A stretch of 64,000 bases of DNA from Vitrella brassicaformis CCMP3155 (lineage: Eukaryota; Protista; Chromerida), in contig CDMY01000581.1 in the NCBI GenBank assembly GCA_001179505.1, forward strand, positions 248,001 to 312,000. Direction: 5' to 3'. Position numbers and translations under genes: made by a program. Positions 32,200 to 50,766 of this stretch are shown one piece after another. Below the pieces are notes generated by a model. That model did no database searches. It saw only the letters and a program-made list of their open reading frames with translations, and had not been told where the DNA came from. Positions within the stretch are counted from its first letter, which is position 1; every line of letters starts with the position of its first letter.

Positions 32200-34144
32200 C
32201 TGGCTCACTTGTCTGTGGAGGACCCACCTGCCGGTGGGTGGGTGGGCCTCTTCTGCGAGAGGCTCGGACGGGTCCTGCGGCTGTCGGCGCTGTCCAGGGA
32301 AAACAGAAACAGGGCAGTCTCGTGGCTCTACATCTCCCCTGAGGACACGCCGGGGGGCATGACCACCAAAGTCACCTTTATGGTCAGTAAACCATGGGCA
32401 AGGCAGGGTCACGGCACGCGACTCAATCGGCAGCTCAAAAGACGCGGTCTTGGCCCTCGGTGATAGTGTATGTGTGTGTTGCTTGTTTAGGTGCATTGCG
32501 ACACCTGCTTTGGCGAAAGTGTCAAGCTGGTCGGCAACCATTCATCCATCGGAGACTGGGATGTAAGCTAAGCGCTCCGCTCCGCTCACAGACAGACAGA
32601 CAGACACATACATGTCAGTCAGGCTGGCGATGCGATGCGCGTGCATCTGGCTGTCTGTCTGTCTGTCTGTCTGTCCCTCTGTCTGTGTTGTGTGTGTGCA
32701 GCCTGCGAGCGGCATCCCTCTGGCCACCGATGACGTCCTCTATCCCATTTGGGTGTCAGCTCCAGTAGAGGTACGCCAGGCCAGCCAGACCAGACCGGCT
32801 CAATATATCACGCAAATGAACGCACTACTTTGGCTTTGTTGTTTCTTCTTTTGCCTGGCCCATTCATTGCTCACGACCCGCAGCTGCCAAGAGATGGATA
32901 CATCGTAAGCAACACAACGCAGACATGAAGGAGACGGCCAGACACGAACCCATTCTCGACCGCCCCTCTGTGTGTGTGTGTGTGTCACTATCATTAATGC
33001 AGGAGTACAAGTACGTCAAGTACGGTGAGCACCACACGAGGTGGGAGGAGGGCTTCGAGGGCAACCGCAGCCTGCAGGTCCCCACCGACACCTCCTCCCT
33101 CGAGGCTCATCTCGCCTCATTCGTGGTGGTCAACGACGACAAGTTCGACGCCATCCCCATTCGGGCGCGGCACCCGGAGATGATCACCTACGACGCCAAA
33201 CGGAAGCTGGGGGCCTTTGTGGGGCGGTGGGGCATCATGAAGGAGAGGTCAGACGCTATCGGACCCCTACTCGAAATCATGGGACTCGACTGGTAAGTGA
33301 GTGGCCACATGACATCCACATCAGATAGATAGATAGCCTAGCGGTCGGTGTCTTGAGGCCAAGAGCCACACACACACACACACACGGATCCTCCCTTCCC
33401 CCTGTGTGTGTGCAGGTTTGTGCGGAATGCGATAGACAATGCGGAGAGCCTGACGGACACGGTGCGTGTGGTGGGCAGCACATTGGTCAGCAAGCTGTCG
33501 ACGGCGGTGGGCACACATCGGGAGGAGATCTACACCAACGGCGACCCTCAAGAGATCGAGGAGATGGGAAAGGCTACCGTCTATCAGGTAAAACCTCGAT
33601 CGGACGGACGGCACCGATGGATGACATTCAGCCAAGAGCTCTGTCTGTCTGTCATGCCTTGCAGGCCAAGAGCCGTGTGGAGGACATTCTGCCGCCCAAG
33701 GCGCTGCTGCCCGTTGCGAGCCACCACCGGCCAGAGGTGGTCGTGACGACCACCCACCCCCACACGATGTCTCGTGACGCAGACGAGGTGGGGTCGAGGG
33801 CGTCTACGTGTGTGGGTGGGGGGCTGCTGGAGTTCCCCTACAACTTTCGGGTGGTCACCACCAAGCAGTGCTCCATGAAGGGCACCGTGGTGGAGACCCG
33901 ACAGCTCTGCGAAGAGGAAAAGGGTCCCGTCATGCACATCAATGTAAGTCAGTGGAGTGACCAAACACACACACACACACACACACATCCACCAGGCAGG
34001 CAGGCACACCTCTCTCGCTGAGTGCATGGTTGTGGTTGTGGTTGTGGTTGTGTGTGCCATCAGTTGAAGTTCACTCGTTTGGGTGACAAGGAGCCCGAAT
34101 TGGAGCTCGACAGGTACTGGGAGAGATTGCATGACAATGATTGA
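32200..34144 (+). CDS. Spliced hypothetical protein with C-terminal FABP/lipocalin-like (calycin) domain; start uncertain
   Basis: Exons include FVGRWGIMKERSDAIGPLLEIMGLDW|FVRNAIDNAESL…, resembling the GxW…D.ll.alGv…R N-terminal motif of FABP-type barrels. Last exon LKFTRLGDKEPELELDRYWERLHDND*, stop 34142-34144. Confidence 0.5.
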
Positions 34145-34149
34145 CTAAC

Positions 34150-35220
34150 CTACGGGTTTTGCGAGCGATCGAGCGATTCGATGGAGTGAGTGAGTGACCA
34201 CGTGATGGGTGGAAGGGCGAGGGAGGGAGGGAGTCCTGTTGGGAGTGATTTTTTCCTGCACCTCTTCCTTCCTTCATTCATTCTGGGGCGTCGTGAGCTG
34301 AGCTCGTGTTTGGCACTTTTTGCAGCTTTGGGGCATGGCATAGTACGTGACGTGACGTCCATTGATCGATCGATACACGCAATGCAGAACAGAGAGAAAC
34401 ATGGTTTTGTTTCCACATCCTGTCTGTCGGTATCGCATCCTCCACTCATCCATCCACTCATCCATCCGTCCATCCTGTCAGTCAGTCCAGGTTTTGCTGC
34501 CTTGTCGCCTCCCCTGCTACCTGCCTGCCTGCCTGCCTGCCTGTGCTGGCTGGCGATACATCACACGAACGCATGTCATTCATGCGTGAGTCACCCACCC
34601 ACCCACCCACCTGCCACCTACCTACCTACCTACCTGCATGAGGCGTGCGTGGTGTGTGTGTGATGGCCAAACCTTTATTTATGCGTCCGTGTCGTGTCGT
34701 GTATATTCTTGACGCATCGCATGGACAGTCCCGACCAGGCAGTCAGTCAGTGAGTCAGTCGTCATGACCTACCTGCCTACCTACCTTATATCAACCAACC
34801 AACCAACCAACCACCGTTTTTCGTGCTAGCTACAGGCCTTGCTATGCTACTACTCTGTCTACCTGCATTCCAACTTTCTGTCCGTGGGCGTATGTGATGT
34901 GATGTGATGTGAGCTGTTTGTTCCATAGGATGTGATGTGATGTATGCTGCTGTGGATGTTGATGTCAGGCTATGCTGTATACTGTCTGTCTGTCTGCGCG
35001 AGTGCCTGCCGCCCGCCTGCCTGCCTATATGCTTTGCACTCCCTTTATATATCCCCATTGATTGATTGATGCCTTTGTCGTGTTGTGGACGTCCGTGTGT
35101 TGTGTGACGGTTGTGTGTGTGTTTGTTTTGTGTCTGTCTTGTTTGTTTCCACGTAGGAGCTGACTCAGTCTTATTATTTTCGTGTGCACGCAAAGCGACT
35201 GTCACAATGATTACATACAA
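34150..35220. repeat. Intergenic compound microsatellite field (CATC, CCTG, ACCT, AGTC, AACC, ATGTG, GTCT units)
   Basis: Successive short tetra- and pentanucleotide arrays read directly; no coding pattern. Confidence 0.75.
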
Positions 35221-35780
35221 CAACACGGGCCTTCCGCGCGGGTGGCAAGGGACTGACCTTCATAAAGGCAATGCATATTAACCGATGAAGCTCGCATCTG
35301 CGACTTACGGTTCGCTATAGGGGGGGGAAACTGTCATTAAGCGTAACACTCGTCTGTGTGTCCGTGATACTCATACAAATACAGTCCCATCAGCACGCAG
35401 AGTCAAACAGGCTCAAGGGGAGGAGGGATCAATCCCCGCCCCATCAGCACACCCCAGTCCCGCAAACCCTCCCCTCCCTCCCCCACGCAGACAGAAGCTA
35501 GTCGCACGCGCGAGGGCGATAGACAAGCGAGAGCGAATCCATCCAGACACATGACTGAACCCCCGACCCTTCCACCCCTCCTTCTCCAACAGCGCATGAG
35601 CCATGTGGGCGATGAACACGTTGGCATCGTGTCCCCACACACACGGTTCGCTATTCATGCGTCGTGATGTTGACGATAGCCAGAGGACTCTCCTCTTCCG
35701 TAGCTGAGAGATCACCTGAAGAAATCAAAACAACTGGCGTCGTGGCTGCGTTCGTTCATGCCACCCGGAGGGAGGAGGGC

Positions 35781-38700
35781 ATGAGCTCCCCCGCCAAGAG
35801 GATCAGCGTGACACTGCGAGGGCAGGCGGGGCCGCAGAAACAGGTCAGGAAACAGATAGATGACGGCCGCCATCTGTGCCGGACGTCTCTCTCCCATCCC
35901 CTGTCTGTTGAGCTGATGCTTGGCCTGCCTGCCTTGTGTGTGTATACAGGTGGTGACGGCCTCTATCGATGAGCTGAGGGCGAAGCTGTTGGCGAAATTC
36001 GGTCTCTCTCACCGGTCCATCCAAGAGGCGCGGCTGTACGTCGATGAGGTACAGTAAGCGAATACATATGATGAATGAATGTGTCACTCAGTCAGTCAGG
36101 GGTGGGTGGATGGATGTGTGTGCGGGTGTGTTGACACCGTCCCTGTATGTATGTGTATGTGTGTGTGTCTGTAGGATCTGATTGAGGATTGTGATGACTT
36201 GGTGGATGGAGATAAGGTGGTCCTGGACCTCTCGCCACGGAGCTCGGGGGCAGACAGGACCGCTGCCCCGGCACCACCACCAGCACTCCCACCAGCACCC
36301 ACTCCATCCGCCGCCCCTGGACAGCAAGCGCGGCCACGAGTGCTTCCGCAGCTCACACAGCAGCCCTTCCAGCAGCAGCCCCAGCAGCCAGCTGGGCCCC
36401 AGCAGCAGGAGCGAGGTCGGCAGGCATCGCAGCAGCGTGTGAGCAACGGCTCTTCTGTCGACCACCAGCACGAGCAGGAGTGCCGCTCTGACGAGCGGTC
36501 GGAGGAAGACCGCACATCGCACACGAGCGAGGACAGTGAGTTGGGGCGGGCGCTGGCGGAGGTGCAGAGGCTGAGGGATCGGGGCAACGCCGCATTCAAC
36601 CGAGGCGATGCGGGGCTTGCTGAGGCTATCGAGGCCTACTCGCTCGCCATCGATAAGGCAAGTGGATGGGTGGTTCGTTCGTGACGAGGGAGGTGATGTA
36701 TAGGATTGACTGGGCTGCTGTGGTATGTGTGTGTGTGTCTGTGTGTGTCTGTGTGTGTATGGGATGGGTGTTCAGCTTAGTATTCGCAGCCCGGTAGGCT
36801 ATCGGTTGAGATCGCGGTCGGACTCCTCGTCTGGCGCGCAGCAAATCGCCGCCACAATGGCTCCGCTGTACGGCAACAGGTACGCACAGTGGCACCCACA
36901 CCAAACCGACAACACACACGCAGCCTGGAGCCTGGGAGAGTGATGTGTGTGCACAGGGCCTTGATGCACTTCAAGGCAGGTGAGTACGAGAAGACGATCG
37001 AGGACGCCAACACGGCTCTGCAGTTCAAACGTGACTACGCCCCGGTCGGTCGGCGAATAGGCACATGGCCCGCCGCAGATACACACCGCTGTCACTGACT
37101 GGCGTGCACTCTCCCCCTCTCTCTCTCTTTCTCTCTCTCTCTGTCCCCCAGGCGTATTTGCGTCTGTGGGGTGCGTTCGAGAAGCTGGGCCGATTTGGTG
37201 AGGCGGCGGAGAGCCTGAGAAAGGTGCTCGAACTCGAGCCCAGACACAGGACAAACCAGTAGGCGACACACATGGACGGACGGACGCACGGATGCAAATG
37301 TGTCCATCATTCGGTGGTCATTCACGTTACAGACACCGAGAAACCTTGAATCGCCTGCTGGCGGCGGCTGCCCGCCAGAGTGCCGCAGCACCAGCTGCTG
37401 CCGCACCCGCAGCTGCTGCTGCAGCAGCAGCAGCAGCAGCAGCGCCCAAGGCTCCCCCCGTGGCCACCACGCCTCTCCGCCCCCCTCCCCCTGCAATCAT
37501 CGCTCGCCACTTTGCCCGGACCAACGATGCTCAAAGTGCTTCTCCCACTCCCCCACCAGATCACCGGGCGGCAGGTAATGTCAACGAGGAGGACGGCTGG
37601 GTAGTCGTCCCTCACGCAGAGAGCGAGAGCGGGGCTGGGGGTGCGCCAGGGGCGGGGCCCCCGGGGCAGGCCGGAGGAGTGGCAGCGCGCAAGAACATCA
37701 TGAAGAAGCTCAAGAAAATTGACGAGTACAAGAAAGCCATAGCGCGAGGTATCTCATGTAGCCAGACAGCCAACCAAGGAAGCCGAAGCTCGCGTTCCGT
37801 CCGTCGAGGGTGGTGAAAGTGCCCCTGTCCGTGTGTCTGTCTGAGCCTGTGTGCAGGTGATGTGTTGCAGGCGGCCCAGCGGCAGTTGGTAGAGCGCGAG
37901 CCTCAGTTGCGCGAGCAGCTCGAGAGACTCAGGGAGGCGGGCGGTGGCGGCAGTGCTGGTGGGAGTGCTGCTGCTGCTGCTGCTGCTGCTAGTGGTGGTG
38001 GTGGTCACGAGACCGCTACGACCACAGCAGCAGCAGCAGCAGCAGCCGCAGCAGCCGCAGCGGGTGTGTCTGGCGGGCCCTCTCGCGCGTCCTTCTCTGC
38101 GTGGACGGAGGCCCTCAATGACACTGCCCAGCCAACCGTCGTGCTCAACTGTGCCAACTTAGGTACCTACCCACACACTCAGTGGGAGGCCACTGACTCA
38201 ACAAACAGTCACCACGCGCGTGTCGTGTCGTCGTGTGTTGTGTGTCTCCAGGTCACACCTACGCCCAGGTTGTGTGTTCAGCGGGTCGTGACGAGCTGCG
38301 GCGTTTCGAGATGATGCGGCGGATGGGTCGCGGTAGTGGGGGCGTTGGTCTGTATGGCGAGCAGGAGGGCATGGGGCTGCGTGCCCGGCCCATGCGCACC
38401 CATTTCTCGTGGGACGGCATCCGAGCGGCTGTCAAGTATTACGAGGCGAGGGGCGTCAAGGTGGTGGGCATCGTCACCCAATCTGTTGTCTCACGTCATC
38501 CGGTACGTGAGGGGTGAGAATGGATGTATGGACGGAGGATGGGATGGATGCGTTGAATGAATGCGCCCTTGGTGCTGGTGTGTGTGTGCTGGTGTGTGTG
38601 TCTCAAGATACCAAGCGACTTGGCTGACATCATCACGCAGTCGCCAAGTCGTGACGAGGCGAGGGACATCGACGATCTGTTCACCATCAAGACCGGTAGG

Positions 38701-41700
38701 TAGGGAGAATGATCTGATCACACAGCGCACCGCACACCCGTTCGTATCCCTCCTGCATTTGCTGTGCTGTTTGTGTGGTGTTGACTGATTCGTTTGACAT
38801 GGCATGAACACCCCCCCAGCGATGCAGCTGAATGCCCAGTACGTCGACAACGACAACTACCGCGACTGGCTGTCAAGGGCTGAGGCCGACGTCAAGGACT
38901 TCCTGCGCCGGACCAAGCTCACACACCACGTCTGCTACATCTTCACTAACCCAGATGGCAACTACGTGCCGGACAAAGAACCACTCACGGTGCGTCTGCC
39001 ACCGAGCATAATTCTAAGACACGTGGCTGTCAACCATTCAATCGCCCGTATGTGTATGTGTGTGTATTGGCTCACAGATAGCGTCCACCCCTCCCCCGCC
39101 CATCGTGAGCATCCTGGCTGCGTCCGAGTACGCCATCAACACCAACTCGCCCCCCCGCCCCTCGCCAGCACCATCACCCACCACCACACCATCCACACCG
39201 TCACAGCAGCAGCCGCCGAGCACCCCCGCTGCCACACCAGCGGCCCGGCGACGGGTGCAGCTCAGATTGCAGCCACTCTGGTCAGTCTGCAAAGGGAAGG
39301 CAAGGCGCGTCAGGAGTGTGACACATACATGTGTGTGTGTGATGTCTCGCGCGTGTAGGTCGCCCAACCAGTTGCCTCGTTCGTTTGAGAGCCCTTTGGA
39401 GGGGTGGCAGATCGAGCACTTGCATCCGATGACGGTTGAGGTCGAGTTGGGCAAGAGCGTCGCAGAGGCCACCAAGGACATGACTCAACAGCTCCTTGCC
39501 AGATGCAGCCTGGTCAGCCCCCTACCACTGCAGATGTCACCGTGCCTGTCTGTCTGTCTGTCTGTGTCTCCATCCATCCATCCTGACTTCTGGCAGGTTT
39601 GTGAGCATTTGCGCCCCGACTTCGCGTCCAAGTTGTCGCTGCATCTGTTTTCGGGCGAGGGTTACGCCATCTCGGCGCGACTCAACTCTCTGTCCCTCGA
39701 AGCGCTGCGGGCCCGCAACAACGAGGTCATGTTCGCGCTGCTCACTCTCGCCTCCGCCGCACCGTTCGTCGACCTTGCCCTCCAGGGCGGCACGGAGGGA
39801 CCGGTCAACGGCAGAGACGGCTTCTGTGCACAGGGGTTCGCACATACGCACTCACTCATGGGACGGAACGCCCGCTGATATGATGCGTATGTGTGAGTGT
39901 GTGTGTTCAGGTATGAGGGCGGCCTGTTCCCCCCCTGGATGGCTCGTCGGTCGGGGTCAGGTTGGCGGAGCAGCCACGTGAGTGAGCGGAGCCTCGCCAT
40001 CTTCTGTTCGACGCTCAAGGTGGTTGCCCGGACCATCAAGGGGTCGTTCAAGCGGCCCCTCCTGGCCACCGTCCGCCGACTCACCCAGTGGAGCCCACTG
40101 GTGCACGCACTCAACCAGCTCTTCTCGCAGGAGACCAACCTCACCGTGGGGCAGAAGGTGCGCCAGATAACTAACAGAGAGAAGAGAGGCAGCCACACAC
40201 ACGTATGCATACGTCCATGTGGCCGGTTGTGCGTGGCTGATTGTTCAGGCGATCATACTGCAGGGGATGGTCTTCATTTTCGCGCAACTGTGGGCGGCGG
40301 TATCGCAGACAATGAGCAAGGGGCCCGCCGCATCTTCCTCGTCTGCATCGTCCTCCTCCAGCCCTTCTCCCGCCGACGCGTCAAGCTGTTCACTCGACGC
40401 CCTGCTCGAGATGTCGCCCTACTTCTGGTACGTACGTGATCCTTGACGGGCCCGTCAATCCATCCATCCATCCATCCATGTGCGTGTGTATGTGAACAGG
40501 GCGTACCTGCTGCTGGAGGCCGTGTTGGAGGACAGCGAGGCCAAGTGCGCAGGCTGCGACGCCAAGCTGGGCACCGACTTCTTCTTCCGCATCGTCCAGG
40601 CCGCCCCCCACAAGCCCGCCAGACCCGATGGCGACGACACTGCTGACGGCAACGACAAGAGGGCGGGGACAGGCGGCAAGGGCGGCGGCAAGAAGGGCGG
40701 CGGCAAGAAGGGCAAGAAGGGCGCAGGCAAGAAGCCCAACAGGAAGCGCCGTGTGGCCGACGATGACACCGACGTCTTCGACGCGCCGGACGACTGCGAG
40801 CCCGACGACGGGGATGCGGAGGAGGGGCAGGGTGGTGATGGGGCCGCTGACGAGACGGCCATTCCGCACTCTCTGTCGCTTGATCTGCGGTGCGGTCAGT
40901 GCAAGAGCGCCTGGGATGAGCTAGAGTGTCACGAGGCGCAGGAGAGGGAGAACAACACCTCGAAGCGCAAAAAACGCAAAAACCACCAGCAGGACGTGGC
41001 CAGGGACAGCCTAGGAGAGGTTGTCAAGGATGAGTTGGGACCGTTCCAGCAGGTAAGTAACTAAGCATGCCGATCCATCCATCGTTCGTATGGATACTGA
41101 TCGGCATCCATGACATGTGCGTGTGTGTATGCGTGTGCAGATTCGCCGTTTCCCGTGGGGCACGCCCGAGCAGGTTGAGTCGTTCGCCAGCATCGACTTC
41201 AGCAAGTACATGGAGCAGAAGGTAAGGTACACACGACAGACATGCCATCCGTCCCTAAGCGAGCCACTGCGCTGACCGCTCTGTGCGCCTAATTCCCATT
41301 CCTGCAGGTGGTGCCGTCAGCAGACTTTCTGGCCAATTACGCTGATCGCGATTGCCCCATCTGTGAGGAGAAGTGCAACCCCCCCGTGGAGCTCAACTGC
41401 AACTGTCGGGATGGGAGGGGCATCCGTGGCGTCATCTGCCTCAGCTGCGTATGTAACATCGGCATCAGGATGTGCCCCTTCTGCGCCACTGACCTTGGCC
41501 CGCTTGACTACAAGGAGGTACGTACACCACGTAGTGTAATCCTGTACACCGCAGACCGAACAACACACACACAACACTTGCGTTATGGATCTCACTTCAT
41601 GACCTTGTTGGCCCCCTCGAGCAGGTCGTGTCCACCCTGCACACGCGCGCCAACGCGTACCACGAGGTCCTCAAGGCCAGGCACCCTGGAGAGGTACGTA

Positions 41701-44700
41701 CGCATCTGTCTGCACACACATGCACATGACACACTCATACATGACATGACATGCACGTGTGTGGTGTGTGGTTGCAACATGCATGGCTCATCAGGACGAG
41801 TGTTTGGTGTGGAAGCCGTCCATCAGGATGTCGCCCAAGCAGGCCGACCTGCTGCGGATCGCCCAGCCGCCGCGCGTCATGCTGACGGCGGCGCAGTTGC
41901 TGGGCCCGGCCGACAGCAAGCGCTACGCCGGCAGCCTCATCGATGGCGTCCACGTCGACATGGCCCTCGGACAGCCATTCGGCTACCGAACTGATGGTGG
42001 GTGGCCTCACAGAGAGCAGGCCTCGATGGTGATTGTTGGGGGATTGGGGGTGGGGTGCATTGATTGTCTTGCGTGCGCTTCAGGGGAGAAGAGGGCGCGG
42101 CTGTGTTGGTTCCCCCCTCTCGATTTGAAGGACCCATCGCTGGACGGCACCGTGCTCACCTTCAATGCCAGCGGACAGACGTACGGCGTGAGAGCACAAC
42201 ACACATGCGCACATACGCAGAAAGGGATGGATGGATGGGTTGTGCAGGGTGACGTTTGAGTCCAAGGGCAAGGACCCCGGCATCGGCACTGGCGCAGTCG
42301 TGCTCTTTGACCCCATCCAGGGCGGGACGGACGTCTGTGACGGTAACCAACACACACACACACACACACATGGCAGCCAACCGCTCAACACACGCGTCTG
42401 TCTCCTTGTTGTTTGTATGCAGCTGACAAGATCGCCCAGCAGCTCAACGCCTCGTTCCCCAACGGCGACCCCCAGCCGCTGCCCCCCTGCGCCCGCCACG
42501 CACAGACCCTCAAGCCCGTCCCCCCTCCCAAACCCACACAGACGGGCGCACCGCTCGATGGCGCACCCAGCACCACCACCCGCCCCACAGCCGCAGCTAA
42601 GAGCAAACAGAAGAAACCCAAGGCCAAGGGGGCTGCTGCAGCCGCAGCATCAGCTGCCGACGCTGGTGCTAGTGCGGCGGCCGGAGCAGCAGCGGCAGCT
42701 TCGGTGGGCGGTGCTGGTGACATGGTGGACGAGGAGGAGCTGGACCTGGACGTGCAGGACGCCCTCGAGGAGTCACTACACCTGGCCAGGCAGCACCGGG
42801 GCGGCGACGGCGAAGGCGATGGAGCGTCGTCCGAGAGCGGAGATGAGGAGTCGGAGAGTGAGTCACCGGAGGGTGCGAGTGCAAGTGCGGATGAGGAGGC
42901 CTTAGCTGAGCGCATGGACCGCTATCTCGAGGAGAGGAACCGTGTCCTCAACAGGGGCACGCGCGCAAGGGGTGAGGGGGCTGGCGGGGCGGCTGGGGGC
43001 GAGTGGCTGCGCACACGCAAGGTCGAGGAGGCTGTCGTCGTGCTGCTCGACGTCTCAGGTAACCACAAACCCCACACTCCCTGGCTCACCACCCATGCAT
43101 CCATCAGTGTATGTATCTCCGTCCATCCCTTCAGAGTCGATGACTGACCGAGCCTTCCCGTCTCACTATGGCGCCCCTCCGGCGGACAGGACCCCCGAGT
43201 GGGACCCATCCGCCCCACAGGGCTTCCTCTCCTTCTTCCCGGAGACCTGGAGCGAGAATGACATCTTCCGTCTGTTCCAGGCGCAGATGGGCTCCAACAT
43301 CATCCGCCCTCGCGGCATCCGCATCCTCAGACACAGAGAGACAGGCATCTCCAAGCGACAGGTACGGTGTCTGTCGGTGTGAGGGGTGGTGGGTGGCCCA
43401 TTTGTGTATGCCTGTGGGGCCGACTGGCCGGCCAATTAACAGGCATTTGTTGATTTTGTGGATGTGGCTTCGGCCAATGCGGCCTTGACGAAGCTGGATG
43501 GCTTCCTGGTTACGAGCGAGACGCCCTCAGTGCGCATCAAGCTTCGGAAGGCCGAGGCGGGGCCAAGGGGGCGGGACAGGTGAGGCAAGAGAGAATATTG
43601 CGCCGACACATGATGGATGGATGGATGGATGCATCGACACATGAGCGGATGGCGTGTGCCTGTCTGTCCGTTAAATCAGGTCGTTCCTGTCTCGGCTGGA
43701 TACGGTCAAGCAGCTGTTCAACTGTTTTGCGAATCGTGTGGAGGCATGTGAGCAGCCGAACACAGCACAGCCATCGAACCAACCAAGACGCCACTGGCTT
43801 GTTGGTCCTGATGAAGCACTCACTTACCCTGCTGGCTGATGCAGACGACTGCCGGCTGAGCATTGGTTTGGTGGCCTTTGGCGACAACGTGGTCATCTCA
43901 CAGCCACTCACATCCGCCGTAGAAGGTAACTCAATGAGCCACTGAATTAGTGAGCACAAGGACCCCCCCACACTCATCGCTGTCTCGGCCTCAGACTTCA
44001 AGGTGTCCTTAGACGAGGCGACGGCCGAGGGTCAGACGCGGCTCTACGACGCCATCGACGTGGCTACCAACATGCTGGTCGAGTACTGCAACCGTGTCGA
44101 GGGTGTGACGGATGACACTGACGATGAGGAGACCGAGGAGCCTTCAACCAGCGAGCCCGGCACGGACGGCACGCAGCGGTCCCTGTCGTCCATCGGGTCG
44201 CCGGAAGCCCAGCCAATGCCATTCTCGGCCGCTCACTCCGGAAGGGGTGGTGGACGGGGCGCCGGCAGGTACACACACATCCATCCACACATGCACAGAC
44301 AGACAGACAGACAGACACAAACGTGGTGCTGTGCTGTGCTGTCGTGACATGTATGTATGTCAGAGGGCTGTATCACTTGATGTCAAGGACGCTCGGCCCC
44401 CCATCCCCCCTCCTTCCCTCGTCTTGCCCACTAGCTCCACCACCACACGCGGCAAACCCAAGCCATCGTCAGCCAAACAGCAGCAGCCACAGCCCACGGT
44501 CAGTGCAGGAATGCCCGAGGGTCGCATTCGCCGTCGCATCCTGGCATTGGCCGATGGGGAGGACACCGTCAGCCAGAGGACGGCAGTCGACGTGCTGAAG
44601 AGGCTGCATAGCAACCCGTGTCGTGCTGGACGCCGTACTCGTCGGCGCCTTCCCGCCTGCCCAAGTTGCCCCCAAAACACGGTGAGGGAGAGAGAGAGAG

Positions 44701-46872
44701 AGAGAGAGGCACGCAGGCGATCGACAGTTTAGAATTGATGCTTTGTGTCATTCATGATGTGTGTGTAGAATATTGGGTGCGATGGCGCGTGCGAGCGGTG
44801 GGTGCTGGCTGGAACCGAAGGACCTGAACCAGGCGCTGCAGCTCTTCGAGCGGGAGAACATGCTCGAGACCAAGACACGCACAACCAGATACATCAAAAC
44901 GGTCAATAACCCCCCCACCTCCCCTCACACGCATCCGTGCCTCCAGCCATCTATCCATCGTTGCGTCTCCCTCCCTTCTTGTTCTCTCTGCAGGGTGCGT
45001 TCGGTTCGGTGGATGAGCTGACCAAGATGGTCAAGACCAACCCCAAGCCCGACGAGACGGAGTCCTTGGCAGTGCCTCTCGGCCTGCAGAACCCCAACCA
45101 GACCGAGTTCGTGGTGCTGCCGTCCACCATCCTCTCGCAGGCAAACACCATACTCGCCGCCAACGTGACCGGCATGGGACCCATGGGACCCACTGCTGCC
45201 AGTCCTGGTAGTCCTGGTCCTGCGGGTGGTCATGGTGGTGCTGGTGGTGCGGTTGGCAGTGTGGCCAACCCCGCCAGACGGATGAAGCGGATCATCAATG
45301 AGCTGCAGAACGTAGAGGTGAGTGAGTGAGGGAGAGAAAGTGGGTGGGCACACGTGTGATTGTGTGACTGTTTGTGGGGATGTGTTGTGTGTATACGTGC
45401 AGGAGAACCCTCATCGCAAGATCCACGTGTTCCCGTGTCGCGACGATCTCAACTACTGGAGAGTGGTCATCCAGGGGCCCACAGACACACCTTACTCAGG
45501 AGGTGAGGTGCATCAGCCAATGAGGCCGACCTGCCGACTAGCCGACCAGCATCCACTGTGACACGCTGCTGTGTGTGTAATGCAGGGTTGTTTCTGCTGT
45601 GGGTGGCCTTCCCGCCCGATTACCCCGCCGCCCCGCCATTGGTGCGTTTCGCTCAGGATCTGACGCGCATCATCCACGTCAACATCAACCCTGACGGAAA
45701 GTAAGACAGACCAAATGCAGGGGTGGGTGGGTGGGCCGGGCACATAACGTGGAGGCCGCGTGTGTCGATGTGTGTGTGTATGTATGTGTTCTGGGCGCGG
45801 CGCAGGGTTTGCCATCCCATCCTTGACCGCAGCTACTCCATGCAGACTCGCCTGCAGGAGGTACGGTGCGGTACGCGCCCACCGCACACGACACGAACAG
45901 ACGTTGTGATGGTTGGCCTGCCCTCCCTCTGGTCAGATTCTGACCATGGTGTATGCGCTGCTCTTCAACCCTGAACCGAAGGACCCCCTCGACTCATTCC
46001 TCGCAAGTGAGTGAGTGGATGAGCCCACCACCCACCCAATCCTCACCACAACACAACAGCCCACACACACACATACATACGCACACACACGCATGGACGC
46101 ATCTCTGTCCCGTGTGTCGTCTTGGTCAATCCTGCAGACATGTACTGGACGAACCAGCAGGAGTTTTACGAGTATGCCCGCAGGGTGACCCGCGACAAGT
46201 GCAGCTTATCCTTCGAAGAAATGCTGCCGCGCATCATGGACCCGGCCGCCTACGACCAGTGGCAGCGGGAGACCCCTTATCGATGCCCACTGGTCAGATA
46301 TATCAATTGAGATATATAAGGCACTTTCCCCCTCCCCCGATGACTGACAACACACCGTCTTGTGTGACTGCAGACGCATCATTTCTTCAAGGATCCCGTG
46401 CGGACGCCTGACGGTATGACGTACGAGCGTGAGGCCATCAAGGAACACATCGAATCCAACGGGCCATTCGACCCGTTCATTGACAAGTGAGTGAGGACAC
46501 GACCCCACACGCGTCAGGTGCCCAGTGAAGGATGTGTGTGTCTTTGTGTGTGACGTGTGAATATATGCAGCCCGTTGTATGAGGAGAATCTGGAGGCGGA
46601 TGTGCGGAAGAAGTGAGTGACCCAGGGCCAACACACACACACACACACACATACACACGGAACACCGATGCGTGCATGCATGCATGCATGCATGCATCCA
46701 TCCACCGACGCCCCGCCCCCCTTTGCCCCTCTGTCTGTGAACGCGTGTGTTTTGTTTTGTTTTGTTGGTGTGGTGTGTGCCATGCAGGCAGCAGGTGGTC
46801 GAGTACATCACCTCCAACTGCCCCTTCCTCGACCTCAACAGCCGATATGCACACACACACGCACACACATGA
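35781..46872 (+). CDS. Giant multidomain protein: Ubl/KHA-like, TPR, Zc3h12a/Regnase-type NYN, Zn ribbon, RING, VWA (with RRM insert), UBC E2, U-box
   Basis: Hand splicing of about 40 introns; most junctions phase-checked and no stop found until 46870-46872 (roughly 2,400 aa, estimate). Motifs: TPR (RLRDRGNAAF…LYGNR|ALMHFKAGEYEKTIEDANTAL…AYLRLWGAF); NYN (VVLNCANLG|HTY…FSWDGIRAAVKYYEARG…DIDDLF…YVDNDNYRDW); RING (CPIC…CNC…CLSC…CPFC); VWA (VVLLDVSES…TRLYDAI…RILALADGED); RRM (GISKRQ|AFVDF); UBC (RIINEL…WRVVIQGPTDTPYSG|GLF…FPPDYP…HVNINPDG|RVCHPIL); U-box (RCPL|THFFKDPVRTPDGMTYEREAIKEHI). Confidence 0.8.
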
Positions 46873-48253
46873 CTGACTGACAGATAGATAGGTGGAGAAA
46901 GAATGAAGGACACACATGATCCGATCCCTTCGTTACATGACATGTGTCCGTCCATGGGATACTGAGGAAAGTGATTGGATTGGAAGGTATGTATCTATCT
47001 ATCTTATTTATCTGACTTGCCTGTTGCTGTTGCTGGGTGGGGTGGGGTGGGGTGAGAGAGGGGTGAGAGAGGTGCCAGCCATTGATTGGTGTATGTAGAG
47101 TAGCAGCTGTACATACATACAGACTGACTGACAGCCAGAGAGGCAGACAGACAGACAGACAGAATTATGATGGATGAGCATTTGACCTGTCTCGTTGCTT
47201 TCTTGTTGCTCTTCCGGGAATCAATCGTCTTGCTGCCGCAAGTGACTTAGTGAGGGAGGGAATGGGCGGGGTCAGGTCAGGTCAGCTGGGGGGTGGGCGA
47301 GCCAGACATAATTTTTGGTCGGCCGGCAGCAAAACTGAGACTCAGACAATAATGATTGATACTGACTGGTCGATAATTGGCAACGCAGCACAGTGAACGA
47401 ACACTCACTCACACACGGCCGCACATGGACACACGAGAAGGTGGACACGAAGCAGACGGAAAGGCTGGGGCGCCAGCACCCAACCACGCATTATAGCATT
47501 TCGCAAAGAGAAAAGAGTGCAACCATTTCCTCATTCATTTATTCACTCATTCACCACACCAACACAGTAAGTAAGTATTCTCTCTTCCCTCACCTCATGT
47601 GTGCTGTGCCTGCCTGCCTGGCCAGCCAGAGTCGGTCGCCTCACGGAAAGCTTCACTCAAACGTGAGATCGATCGACAGCAGATCGAGCACAAAAAAGAA
47701 AGAAACAAACTAACGACGAAATTAAAATTGCTAGCGGCACTTACTGGCTGCATGGCTCATATCTCCGCCATCTTCAAGGCGGCGGTGTGCCAGTCCAGGT
47801 ATATATGGATAGATAATGTGTAATCGAAATGCACTCATAAAATAGCGGGCTGAAACTGACCACTTTCCGTCTGTCTGTCTGTCTCCGCTTTTCTATCTGC
47901 CGGCGGTGGACCGTGTCCACGCGCACAGGAGCTTCATCTCATCTATAGCTAAGCACAACGAGACGAGACGAGACATGGGAGCACAAGACAATTGGCAGCT
48001 TGGCAGCACCTGGTACGCACAGCTGCGGCTGGCGTGTAATACGTATGTATGTGTACGTATGTATGTATGTATGTATCCGTGCACTCAAAGACCAGTTAAA
48101 TGATTGATTCTACAAATGAATGCCTACAGACTCACACATGCAGTGCAGTCCGTGTCTACACAGCCCGCCACCCTGGACAGGACAGCAGCCCAGCCCAGCC
48201 CCCTCCTACAAAAACTGGTGGACTGGACACACAAAATGGCTGGGCTGGGCTGG

Positions 48254-50766
48254 CTACATGCCCTCTTTCTGGTGCGTAGACCCGCACCGCTCCGTAGTAT
48301 GGATATTCGCCGCCCCCGACCACGTGCACTCATCCCCCTCGGTCAAGCCCTCCATTGCCGCCCCCTTCAGCGACTTCCGTCTGGCCATCAGGTTCTCCAG
48401 GCTGGTGGACGGCCGTGTCGACAGTGTCGACATCCTGCTGGCCTTGGCTCGGCCGCTGGCGACCTTGCTGTATGTGGTAGTAGTGGCGTCCTCTGTGTCT
48501 GGGGGGAAGGCGGAGAAGTCCTCACCTTGGATGCAGAGGGGATGTGGCTGTGGGTGTGGGGCGTCCTGCAGCCCCCCGCTGCCCTGGCTGTGAAGGCGGT
48601 CGACTTTGCTGGCCTTGCTGAATTTGCTGGTGCTGCGGGGGAGTCGCTTCAGCTCCATTTGGAAGTCTTCCATGCTGATGACTGCTCACAGGTAGCCAGC
48701 ACACAAAGAGAGGCAGACATGGGCGAGGTGTGAGTAGGTCATGGTCCCTCTCTTTCTTACCTACCTACCTGAGTTGGAGGTACCCGGCGTCGGGTCTCCC
48801 ACATCTGACAGGTCATTGTCTCCCTCTTCTTCTCCTTCTCCCTCGCTGAGGGGGCTTCTTTGGCTCAGGGGACTCTTGATCTCTCCCACATCTGGGGTGC
48901 CACGAGATGAACGATTTCGCTGACGAGCCTGAAATACATACATAGAGACACAACTCGTACAGCGGCAGGTGGGAACAATCGAGGACAGCTGGAAATGTGC
49001 TGCCCAGATGCTCACCTTTCTCTGTCCCAAGGGACGGGCCGCCACCTCACGCAAGAGAAGCTTCCGGAACTGTACGTAGACGACCACAACCAGTTGACCA
49101 CAATACATACATAATTGTCTTCCCTCACTCCTTTTTGGCCACCCGTTTCCGTACGTGGTAGACGGGATCGTTCCAATTCGGCAGCGAGATGGACCGCCGC
49201 AGCGCTGAGGAGCCGCCGCTATTGTCTGTCGACTGGTCAAACGGTGGCAGCCGCGATGAGCTGGAGTTGTCCATGTCTCGCACGACCGACAGCGATATCT
49301 CTGTGCCATTAAACGAGGCTCCCGCGTTCTTGCGCGACTGCGAGATGTTGAGCAACTTCTGCGCCACCTTGCTCATCGGCTGGGTCTTGTGTCCTTCACC
49401 GGCCTCCTCTTCATCTTCTAGCTCAATCTCGGTGTCCGATTCAGATATAGTTCGCGCAATTTTCCATCTCTCGGTATACCTCCGCAGCAGGCTGCTGATG
49501 ATCGCCGTCTGCGCCTTCGAGAATGCGTGCGTTCGGCGGTCTTCATAGCCCTTAAACAGAGACGCGGTCGAGACGGAAACGTAGAAGTTGTCTTCGTTCA
49601 TCATGACAGTCCTCTGGATGGGATCGCGCCTGTCGCTCATAGGGGTGCTTTGCGCCGACCCGACGCTCCCGCGGCCGGCCCTTGCTCTGGCATTCCCGTC
49701 ATGAGCGTCGCTGTCATCGCGCTCGGGTGTTTGGGAGCTGAGGGGGAGAGGGGGGAGGGGAACAGGATGTGGGGGATTGTGGAGGACGAGACCGATGATC
49801 TGACGGAGATGGAAGAAATGGCCATCTGACATTTGGACAGCGAGACATGAATCCGATACATGTGGTGCTGTCTGTGTCGATTGCTTTGTACACGCATTGT
49901 AATATTACATGGCATTTTGGCTTTGCCCGAGGCGAGTCTGTCCACTTCGTGGAAGCAGTCGCCGGGCCGCGTCAGGGCGAAGATGAGCAGCTTGCTCTGA
50001 TAAACGCACACGTTGTCTCTTGTGGATGGCACGAGTTCTCTTTGTGACGTACAAGAAAGATTAGGAAAGGCTTCCTGCCCATGAAGGTGAAGATCGGGGC
50101 GTCGCTGTCGGTGGACTGGAAGAACTTGAGGAAGGACGGGTATTCCTCACGAACTCGCCGCTCGATCTCGTGCAGGGCCGCTGTGTACGCCTCCCGGTCG
50201 TACGACAGCCTGCATCATACACATGACAACAATCGTGCTCACATTCGCACCGACTGCACGAATGACGTGAACCTTAGTCACCTTAAAAACTTGGCGACGA
50301 CGTCCTCCACCTGTCTGCCACCATTGTCTCCGATTGTCAGCCCCAAGAGGGTGTTCCGCAGTCGCCGTCTCTCTTCCTCTTTGTTCTCCCAGCCCACGAT
50401 CGCCCCCTCGACCTCGGGGTCGAGCAGTACCTCCCCAGTCCGCCTGCCCAGCCGGCTTGTAGAGGTTTCGAGGCCGCCCAAAGGCATGCTCTCCGTCTGG
50501 GGTATGTATGGATTCAGCACGAGTTCGCACGTAGGGTCGTCGAGCAGCGCGACATCAGCGTCGCGGGCCCACTCGAATGACGGCAGCTGCTGGCTGGTGG
50601 AATTATCCTCTTCAGCGGCTGCCACTTCTGCTTGTGGGGACTCCATGATGATGTCCATGACGTGTCGCGGCCGTGAGAGGTGAGGCGGGAGCCTCCTGCT
50701 GCCTCCTGGGCTGGCCTTCCTCAGTGACCTGAGGCTGGTCTTGGGGCTTGAAAACCTTTGAGCCAT
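48254..50766 (-). CDS. Spliced hypothetical protein, Ser-rich, possibly with a degenerate cyclic-nucleotide-binding-like segment
   Basis: Long open exons 50278-50820, 49125-49832 and 48254-48673 joined by GT-AG introns. LIFALTRPGDCFHE only weakly recalls a CNB GDxFGE motif. Confidence 0.5.

Follow-up and report, generated by a model that had tools for sequence, protein, structure and literature searches.

The ubiquitin-conjugating enzyme (E2) and ubiquitin ligase (E3) activities are combined with each other and with substrate-binding modules in several known ways. E2/E3 hybrids such as UBE2O and BIRC6, the joining of TPR repeats to a U-box in CHIP, RING-VWA ligases, and links between NYN domains and the ubiquitin system are all known, and mosaic proteins are common in protists. 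Here we describe a locus of the chromerid Vitrella brassicaformis CCMP3155 that recalls each of these arrangements. It was found in a 64,000-nucleotide (nt) window, the whole stretch of DNA analyzed (assembly GCA_001179505.1, contig CDMY01000581.1, positions 248,001 to 312,000 of the forward strand), and it occupies positions 35781–46872 of the + strand of this window, whose numbering is used throughout. The literature was searched for this domain combination and for E2–U-box fusions, and nothing relevant was found. We found that the locus is a single gene and a single transcription unit with a defined exon structure, that it encodes U-box, UBC (E2) and VWA domains, and that its reading frame is broken within the VWA-coding region. 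On balance, we lean toward the view that this one gene gives one long spliced mRNA and was built for a giant ubiquitin-system protein of ~2,430–2,460 codons, and that its main mRNA is frame-broken.

Gene structure and transcription

The gene was modelled with a dynamic programme based on codon usage and splice sites, followed by RNA-based correction and then by frame-constrained refinement. The resulting model runs from an ATG at 35781 to a TGA at 46870–46872 and has 40 exons and 39 introns, with a coding sequence of 7,305 nt or 2,434 codons. This structure agreed with an initial annotation of the locus, made from the sequence without database searches, which had placed an open reading frame (ORF) of about 7.3 kb with about 40 introns at the same coordinates. 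The introns (38 GT-AG and one predicted GC-AG) had a median length of 88 nt and ranged from 67 to 184 nt. The + strand between 35.7 and 46.9 kb is a succession of stop-free pieces in shifting frames that carry recognisable protein motifs, and coding signal was absent from both flanks (34000–35780 and 46873–48300). Low-complexity segments account for about one third of the chain.

Within the coding span, the joints from 38989/39078 to 44901/44994 were taken from RNA contigs. RNA-type contigs of two runs supported 21 introns, 15 of them directly and 6 more by contig arithmetic or loose ends; the 15 GT..AG joints were present in both X5 and X6, in contigs over 38945–44944. These two runs contained 0.62 of the sampled words of 39300–45299, which is approximately the exon share, and in both of them transcript abundance sufficed for the assembly of multi-kb contigs. 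The most informative contig was one of 9,385 nt in X6 (record 9), which is colinear with exons 12–30 and in which the record distances between pieces (180, 753 and 515 nt) equal the summed lengths of the model exons. It starts within exon 8, just past (GCN)n repeats, and its ~645 nt ahead of 39078 span the remainder of that exon and exons 9–11; it thus joins exon 8, which encodes the first NYN strand, to exon 30 of the VWA domain. At the other end, a loose end at 44902 (X5 and X1) corresponded to the first 30 nt of exon 32. Further upstream, at 35500–38944, X6 contained 0.55 and X5 0.51 of the words, where the exon share is 0.60. All gaps between coding exons from 38162 to 44994 are introns removed in RNA. 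Because of this, the locus is one transcription unit and not several genes, and no gene boundary lies between the NYN and RING regions or between the RING and VWA regions. The single gene proposed in the initial annotation, for which such a boundary had been named as counter-evidence, was thereby supported.

Reading frame of the expressed mRNA

A frame that is open over all 40 exons was obtained in one model only, in which exon 30 is 44366–44617 (252 nt); refinement failed at exon 30 with any other choice. This form exists in the spliced model and was not seen in any RNA contig. The form found in RNA is 44364–44681 (318 nt; contig pieces 43993–44265 and 44361–44675), with no gaps and no other letters across 44361–44675 in X5, X6 and X1, and with loose ends at 44768. 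Its acceptor at 44364, which ends the 95-nt intron 29, was found in X5 and X6, and its donor at 44682 in X5, X6 and X1. Neither an alternative exon-30 joint nor skipping of exon 30 was observed among the contigs, which drop minor variants. In the RNA form, exon 30 is read in genomic frame 1 and a TGA is reached at 44596–44598, which is codon 2032, so that the VWA domain has no continuous frame in the expressed mRNA. Combining the acceptor of the open model (44366) with the RNA-supported donor (44682) does not help, as the ORF then stops at codon 2111, near 45013. The sites needed for the open form were also poor: the donor after 44617 scored −3.3 bits and the acceptor before 44366 scored −4.2 bits, both below all 38 other sites, and the product made from this exon would drop a beta-strand-like segment, VVLDAVLVG, taken to be a core strand of VWA. 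Because each form of exon 30 has a length divisible by three, skipping of this exon would be frame-neutral. The two acceptors form a tandem NAGNAG-type site (CAG/AG/G) at 44362–44365, of which the RNA uses the upstream AG (44364) and the open model needs the downstream one (44366).

The location of the break was examined with frame-discriminating codon log-odds trained on the other exons, which ranked the true frame first in 133 of 147 windows (66 nt each). The head of exon 29 (43997–44100) was assigned to frame 2 (−18.6, −17.1 and +23.9 for frames 0, 1 and 2, respectively), and the tail of this exon (44130–44268) gave no clear frame signal. Within exon 30, both 44364–44480 (+5.0, −5.5 and −15.8) and 44481–44598 (+8.2, −14.8 and −10.0) were assigned to frame 0, and the 60-nt windows 44604–44663 (−7.1, +5.5 and −5.0) and 44619–44678 (−8.7, +5.2 and +1.3) to frame 1, as was exon 31 (−8.3, +18.9 and −19.5). 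The switch from frame 0 to frame 1 thus falls near 44600–44615, inside the VWA domain, between the LADGED strand and the VVLDAVLVG segment. In addition, of the three frames in the tail of exon 30, only frame 1 continues across the confirmed 87-nt intron 30 into the open exons 31–40. Taken together, the codon signal and the phase of intron 30 point to an apparent +1 shift that is present in both genome and mRNA near 44600–44615. The ILALADGED piece of exon 30 alone showed no significant similarity to YegL, the VWA protein used for comparison below, and its frame was assigned from codon statistics and collinearity. No stop codon or known slippery motif for +1 recoding was present at the shift site, and exon 30 had no match when JGI metagenome contigs were scanned with exact patterns.

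The UBC and U-box domains both lie downstream of the break, in exons 31–40, which are open and have canonical splice sites. Since these ten exons have stayed open, the lesion is either recent, in which case it may be specific to the culture, or is bypassed in some of the transcripts. Their openness and strong coding signal argue for selection on the downstream part that lasted until recently or continues today. Two elements of the initial annotation were not confirmed by this analysis. The single apparent reading frame is interrupted by the TGA in the RNA form of exon 30, and the self-contained single polypeptide is not what the main assembled mRNA encodes, as this mRNA goes out of frame upstream of the E2 and the U-box.

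Domain content of the encoded protein

The UBC core is encoded by exons 32–37 (45276–46199; amino acids ~2177–2324). Exon 34 matched Pfam UQ_con (PF00179) with 29.6 bits (E = 6e-7; cut-off 27) and exon 33 with 24.1 bits (E = 3e-5), at consecutive profile positions 43–80 and 9–46, respectively. The best PDB matches were UBE2D2/UBE2D3 (E = 1.2e-4). In the spliced translation aligned with UBE2D2, the catalytic Cys is amino acid 2264, within GKVCHPIL and 8 residues past an HVN motif that corresponds to HPN, with His and Asn kept and Pro replaced by Val. The C-terminal U-box begins ~30–45 residues after the UBC core and is encoded by exons 37–40 (46278–46872, including the stop codon at 46870–46872; amino acids ~2351–2420). 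Exon 38 alone reached 40.1 bits with Pfam U-box (PF04564; cut-off 21.4, E = 4e-10, profile positions 12–44 of 73), and the best PDB matches were the CHIP/STUB1 U-box (E = 1.3e-5), then LubX and UBE4B. As judged by their nearest matches, the U-box resembles that of CHIP and the E2 resembles UbcH5.

The VWA domain (43028–44901; exons 24–31, amino acids ~1682–2082) is split by an RRM and by a low-complexity insert (~44101–44528). Its single exons had no Pfam match, and the spliced core, with the RRM and the low-complexity insert removed, was compared with Escherichia coli YegL (IPR002035; PF00092/PF13519). The Smith-Waterman score was 81, versus 28.6 ± 4.3 for shuffled sequences (z = 12.2), and none of 2,000 shuffles reached 81. 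With phmmer, the core scored 16.6 bits and ranked first of 5,001 sequences, the best of 5,000 composition-matched decoys scoring 9.7 bits. This likeness was independent of the frame-broken exon, as exons 24/25 and 27–29 with exon 30 left out scored 76, again with z = 12.2. The residues of the metal ion-dependent adhesion site type, in DVSES (43046–43142, across intron 24), the T of GQTRLYDAI (44030–44056) and the D of LADGED (44547–44564), paired with DVSGS, GDTPM and TDG of YegL. These comparisons support the VWA assignment. Other searches with this domain were less useful. A YegL-seeded search intended for building a VWA profile yielded nothing but YegL copies (identity of at least 90%), and the pairwise shuffle test was used in its place; ESM Atlas gave unrelated neighbours (a phage connector and HEAT) with few shared features for two VWA fragments; and a word-seeded homologue search with exon 29 yielded no candidate sharing three 5-residue words.

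The RRM (43218–43550; amino acids ~1720–1803) is inserted directly after the first metal-binding loop of VWA. It is supported by sub-threshold Pfam matches, namely RRM_1 (PF00076) for exon 26, the RNP1 half, with 18.0 bits (cut-off 20.7, E = 0.0027, profile positions 42–66), and RNA_bind (PF08675) for exon 25, the RNP2 half, with E = 0.05, also below the cut-off. By eye, an RNP2-like FLSFF and an RNP1-like KRQAFVDF could be recognized. Similarly, the three TPR motifs in the N-terminal part (36538–37256; exons 3–6, amino acids ~176–292) are supported by sub-threshold matches of exons 5 and 6 to TPR_1, TPR_2 and TPR_8 (PF00515, PF07719 and PF13181; 18.4–20.7 bits versus cut-offs of 25.7–27.8, E = 4e-4 to 2e-3), and the first repeat had no Pfam match. 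The predicted GC-AG intron (36658–36841, AAG/GCAAGT) is found in this region and is followed by a 38-nt mini-exon (36842–36879) that completes the second TPR (APLYGN-R-ALMHF); none of the RNA contig joints cover this intron or the mini-exon. Upstream of the TPRs, we noticed in the translation a possible ubiquitin-like (beta-grasp) module at 35796–36237 (amino acids ~6–75), which had not been listed previously; exon 2 had no Pfam match.

A domain of the Regnase/ZC3H12 NYN type is likely encoded by exons 8–11 (38126–38989; amino acids 522–703). Of 100 named ESM Atlas matches of exon 11, 63 belonged to PF11977, with a top score of 0.85 and 174 shared features. Such a number of shared features is usual for genuine members of a family, but we regard these scores as a lead only. 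Five blocks (VVLNCANL, FSWDGIRAAV, DIDDLF, DNDNYRD and Y.F.N...P...PL) are presumably collinear with Regnase-1, with an insertion of ~48 amino acids. DIDD (637–640) and DNDNYRD (656–662) are present, and the first acidic position is N529 in VVLNCANL; N529, D639, D640 and D658 are what we take to be the equivalents of Regnase-1 D141, D225, D226 and D244. If this identity is right, nuclease activity is doubtful, because the first catalytic Asp position reads Asn in this assumed alignment, and the domain would probably be a candidate RNA binder rather than a nuclease. The RNA cleavage suggested in the initial annotation is therefore questionable. Searches for relatives were negative: plasmid sequences searched by tblastn with the NYN exon yielded chance matches only, and a word-seeded homologue search with exon 11 found no candidate sharing three 5-residue words.

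The regions between NYN and VWA were more difficult to classify. The middle region (39359–41221; amino acids 771–1255), whose introns were all confirmed by RNA contigs, contains helical-looking segments, a basic patch and two CxxC pairs (40543–40566 and 40888–40914). These pairs are ~110 residues apart with a Gly/Lys/Asp-rich insert between them and may represent a split zinc ribbon. Exon 19 (41350–41496) encodes a Cys-rich module with eight Cys spaced C-x2-C-x11-C-x-C-x10-C-x2-C-x8-C-x2-C, for which we consider a RING-like identity, so far unproven, an even bet; its AlphaFold single-sequence model was poor (predicted local distance difference test score 49.5) and unusable for fold search. Exons 21–23 (41795–42342; amino acids 1349–1479) probably encode a beta-rich domain, which had no Pfam match. 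A phmmer search of the exon 21–22 stretch against 1.84 billion representatives returned two spurious matches and no others, one to a tandem-repeat protein and one to an FN3 protein.

Genomic context

The window has a GC fraction of 0.52–0.62, is intron-dense and looks like eukaryotic nuclear DNA. Another multi-exon gene with strong coding signal is located on the + strand at 32916–33943 and ends ~1.8 kb upstream (near 33950). An alternative in-frame ATG at ~35670, in the same open stretch upstream of 35781, would add 37 residues. Downstream, a convergent gene lies on the − strand at ~48329–50661. The 9,385-nt X6 contig continues ~3.5 kb past the stop (46873–50350), which is probably a merger with the transcript of this convergent neighbour and would imply that the two genes overlap at their 3′ ends. 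The introns frequently contain (AC)n/(TG)n and CAGA/CATG microsatellites (for example, 36720–36760 and 46630–46665), and one at 46850–46870 extends into the final ORF codons (YAHTHAHT followed by the stop).

An exact look-up of three ORFs from the gene region in a protein collection gave no match, and the window's own protein was missing from the library of 1.84 billion representatives. Marine sediment metagenome runs of 2023–2025 (X13–X18) contained 7–32% of the exact 31-mers of 35500–38944, which shows that the organism or a near-identical strain occurs in nature.

Discussion

The most likely interpretation of this locus is a lineage-specific giant ubiquitin-system protein, whose intact or ancestral form couples an E2 and a U-box to client- and RNA-binding modules. 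The order of modules would be a possible ubiquitin-like module, three TPRs, the NYN-like domain, a helical/zinc region, the RING-like module, a beta domain, VWA with its inserted RRM, the E2 and the U-box. By analogy with these families elsewhere, the built-in E2 would be charged at Cys2264 by a ubiquitin-activating enzyme (E1), and the adjacent U-box would activate the E2–ubiquitin conjugate, either in cis or between the partners of a dimer. Protein clients may be held by TPR and VWA, and the RRM and the NYN-like domain may tether the enzyme to RNA or ribonucleoproteins, such that RNA-bound or chaperone-bound clients would be ubiquitylated. The role in RNA surveillance or antiviral defence raised in the initial annotation would be hypothetical. 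In the sequenced strain, the main product would be an N-terminal protein of ~2,031 amino acids that lacks the VWA C-terminus, the E2 and the U-box. The full-length chain, if still produced by way of weak alternative splice sites, skipping of exon 30 or recoding, would account for a minor share at most; otherwise its loss would be recent.

Several observations weigh against this interpretation. With regard to domain content, the Pfam and PDB profile scores refer to single exons and not to whole spliced domains. NYN exons 9–11 had no HMMER match in Pfam or PDB (as single exons, with chance PDB matches). Exon 19 matched no Pfam RING family at E ≤ 10, and its spacing fails the cross-brace pattern, with 10 residues instead of 2–3 between ligands 4 and 5; four of its five best PDB matches were the RING domains of TRIM5, TRIM34 and TRIM31, at sub-threshold E values of 0.38–4.9. 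For amino acids 771–1255 and 1349–1479, no homologue was found in Pfam or phmmer searches, the best Pfam match of the former being zf-CHY at E = 0.17–0.6. Of the domains listed in the initial annotation, U-box, UBC, VWA, TPR and RRM were supported (UBC and U-box above cut-off, VWA through YegL, TPR and RRM below cut-off), NYN is probable and lacks a profile match, and RING has no profile support, so that two of the eight domain calls are soft. With regard to transcription, exons 1–8 have no joint-level RNA evidence, the contigs do not prove that all joints occur on one molecule, and, as they retain the major variant only, a minor productive isoform may go unseen. In addition, genome and RNA may share one culture, and the frame break may be strain-specific.

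We considered three other explanations. It is rather unlikely that the full-length protein of ~2,434 amino acids is the main functional product, an RNA-sensing E2 plus E3, with the frame solved through exon 44366–44617, through skipping or through +1 recoding. In its favour, a fully open 40-exon ORF does exist, skipping of exon 30, whose two forms (252 and 318 nt) are both divisible by three, would keep the frame, the ten downstream exons with intact E2 and U-box are still open, and rare variants are dropped by contigs. However, the RNA consistently used the donor at 44682 (X5, X6 and X1) and the acceptor at 44364 (X5 and X6) with no alternative joint, the rescuing sites were the weakest of the gene, the rescued product would lose a VWA core strand, and the shift site showed no recoding signal. 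A more specific version of this scheme, in which a single chain with a UbcH5-like UBC and a CHIP-like U-box is made through a minor splice form or recoding and is directed to RNA-bound clients by a catalytically dead NYN and by the RRM inserted at the metal-binding face of VWA, appears unlikely; it would amount to an RNA-gated, self-sufficient ubiquitylation module with no counterpart among described ligases. Still less probable, in our view, is that the gene has been recently disabled (a unitary pseudogene or a culture lesion) and is transcribed with neither product functional. The premature stop in the major mRNA, the position of the shift inside a conserved domain, and the failure to find either a homologue or the region's exact ORFs in the protein collection would all fit such a scenario, but the 7.3-kb coding sequence contains no other lesion, strong codon signal flanks this one on either side, all other 38 introns keep usable sites, and the transcript assembles into multi-kb contigs in two runs.

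The remaining explanation, that two or more adjacent genes on the same strand were merged in the model (for example, TPR-NYN, RING-VWA and UBC-U-box), is very improbable overall and is largely refuted for 38027–44994. Exons 1–8 leave some room for it, a contig is not proof of one molecule, and Met codons follow the break in exons 31 and 32. Nevertheless, all gaps between coding exons are introns of 67–184 nt, those over 38989–44994 are all spliced out and leave no space for a promoter or terminator, and the nearest non-coding stretches lie outside 35781–46872. A single gene for a giant ubiquitin-system protein, with a frame-broken main mRNA, is thus the reading we retain.

Two consequences deserve attention. 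An ORF-preserving gene model of this locus conceals a frame break that is left unrepaired in the RNA, and therefore automated or by-eye annotation of the gene would overstate the translated product. Should the full-length chain be produced, it would represent a rare case in which a canonical E2 and a canonical U-box E3 are naturally fused, together with an RNA- and client-binding scaffold; it could then serve as a compact model for hard-wired E2–E3 pairing with substrate and RNA recognition, and as a source for engineered ligases.

Comparison with known ubiquitin-system proteins helps to define what is distinctive about this gene. Its closest known counterpart in several respects is CHIP/STUB1: the U-box is nearest to CHIP U-boxes (E = 1.3e-5), the E2 core is nearest to UBE2D2/3, the usual partner of CHIP, and a three-TPR block is present in the N-terminal part. 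In contrast to CHIP, which joins TPR and U-box by a coiled coil, the two are separated here by ~2,000 residues and six other modules, the E2 is built in covalently, and NYN, RING-like, VWA and RRM modules are added. Thus, from the CHIP-type TPR/U-box unit invoked in the initial annotation, the likeness of the U-box was retained, whereas the coupling of TPR to U-box through a helical hairpin, which characterizes the CHIP type, was not found. By eye, the Lys that we assume the EEVD “carboxylate clamp” to require in the third repeat also appears not to be kept. UBE2O and BIRC6 are similar in being very large chains in which a UBC core with a catalytic Cys is combined with substrate-binding modules, and by this likeness the protein could plausibly act as a stand-alone ubiquitylating enzyme; those proteins, however, have no U-box or RING beside UBC, whereas here a canonical U-box follows after ~30–45 residues, and outside the UBC core they presumably share no sequence relationship with this protein. 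Regnase-1/ZC3H12A, N4BP1 and KHNYN resemble the NYN-like domain through its PF11977 neighbours in the ESM Atlas, and, like theirs, this domain accompanies ubiquitin-system modules, but it has neither a CCCH finger nor a KH domain, carries the insertion of ~48 amino acids and has Asn at the D141 position. The RING-VWA ligases of plants and protists (WAV3/WAVH) presumably offer a parallel for a RING-like module upstream of VWA in one chain; they differ in that the RING-like module here has atypical spacing and no profile support, and in that VWA, which here holds an RRM, precedes UBC and U-box. The gene can thus be viewed as a variant of the E2–E3 hybrid that is unusual in two features, a canonical U-box that directly follows a canonical UBC, and a VWA domain into which an RRM is inserted.

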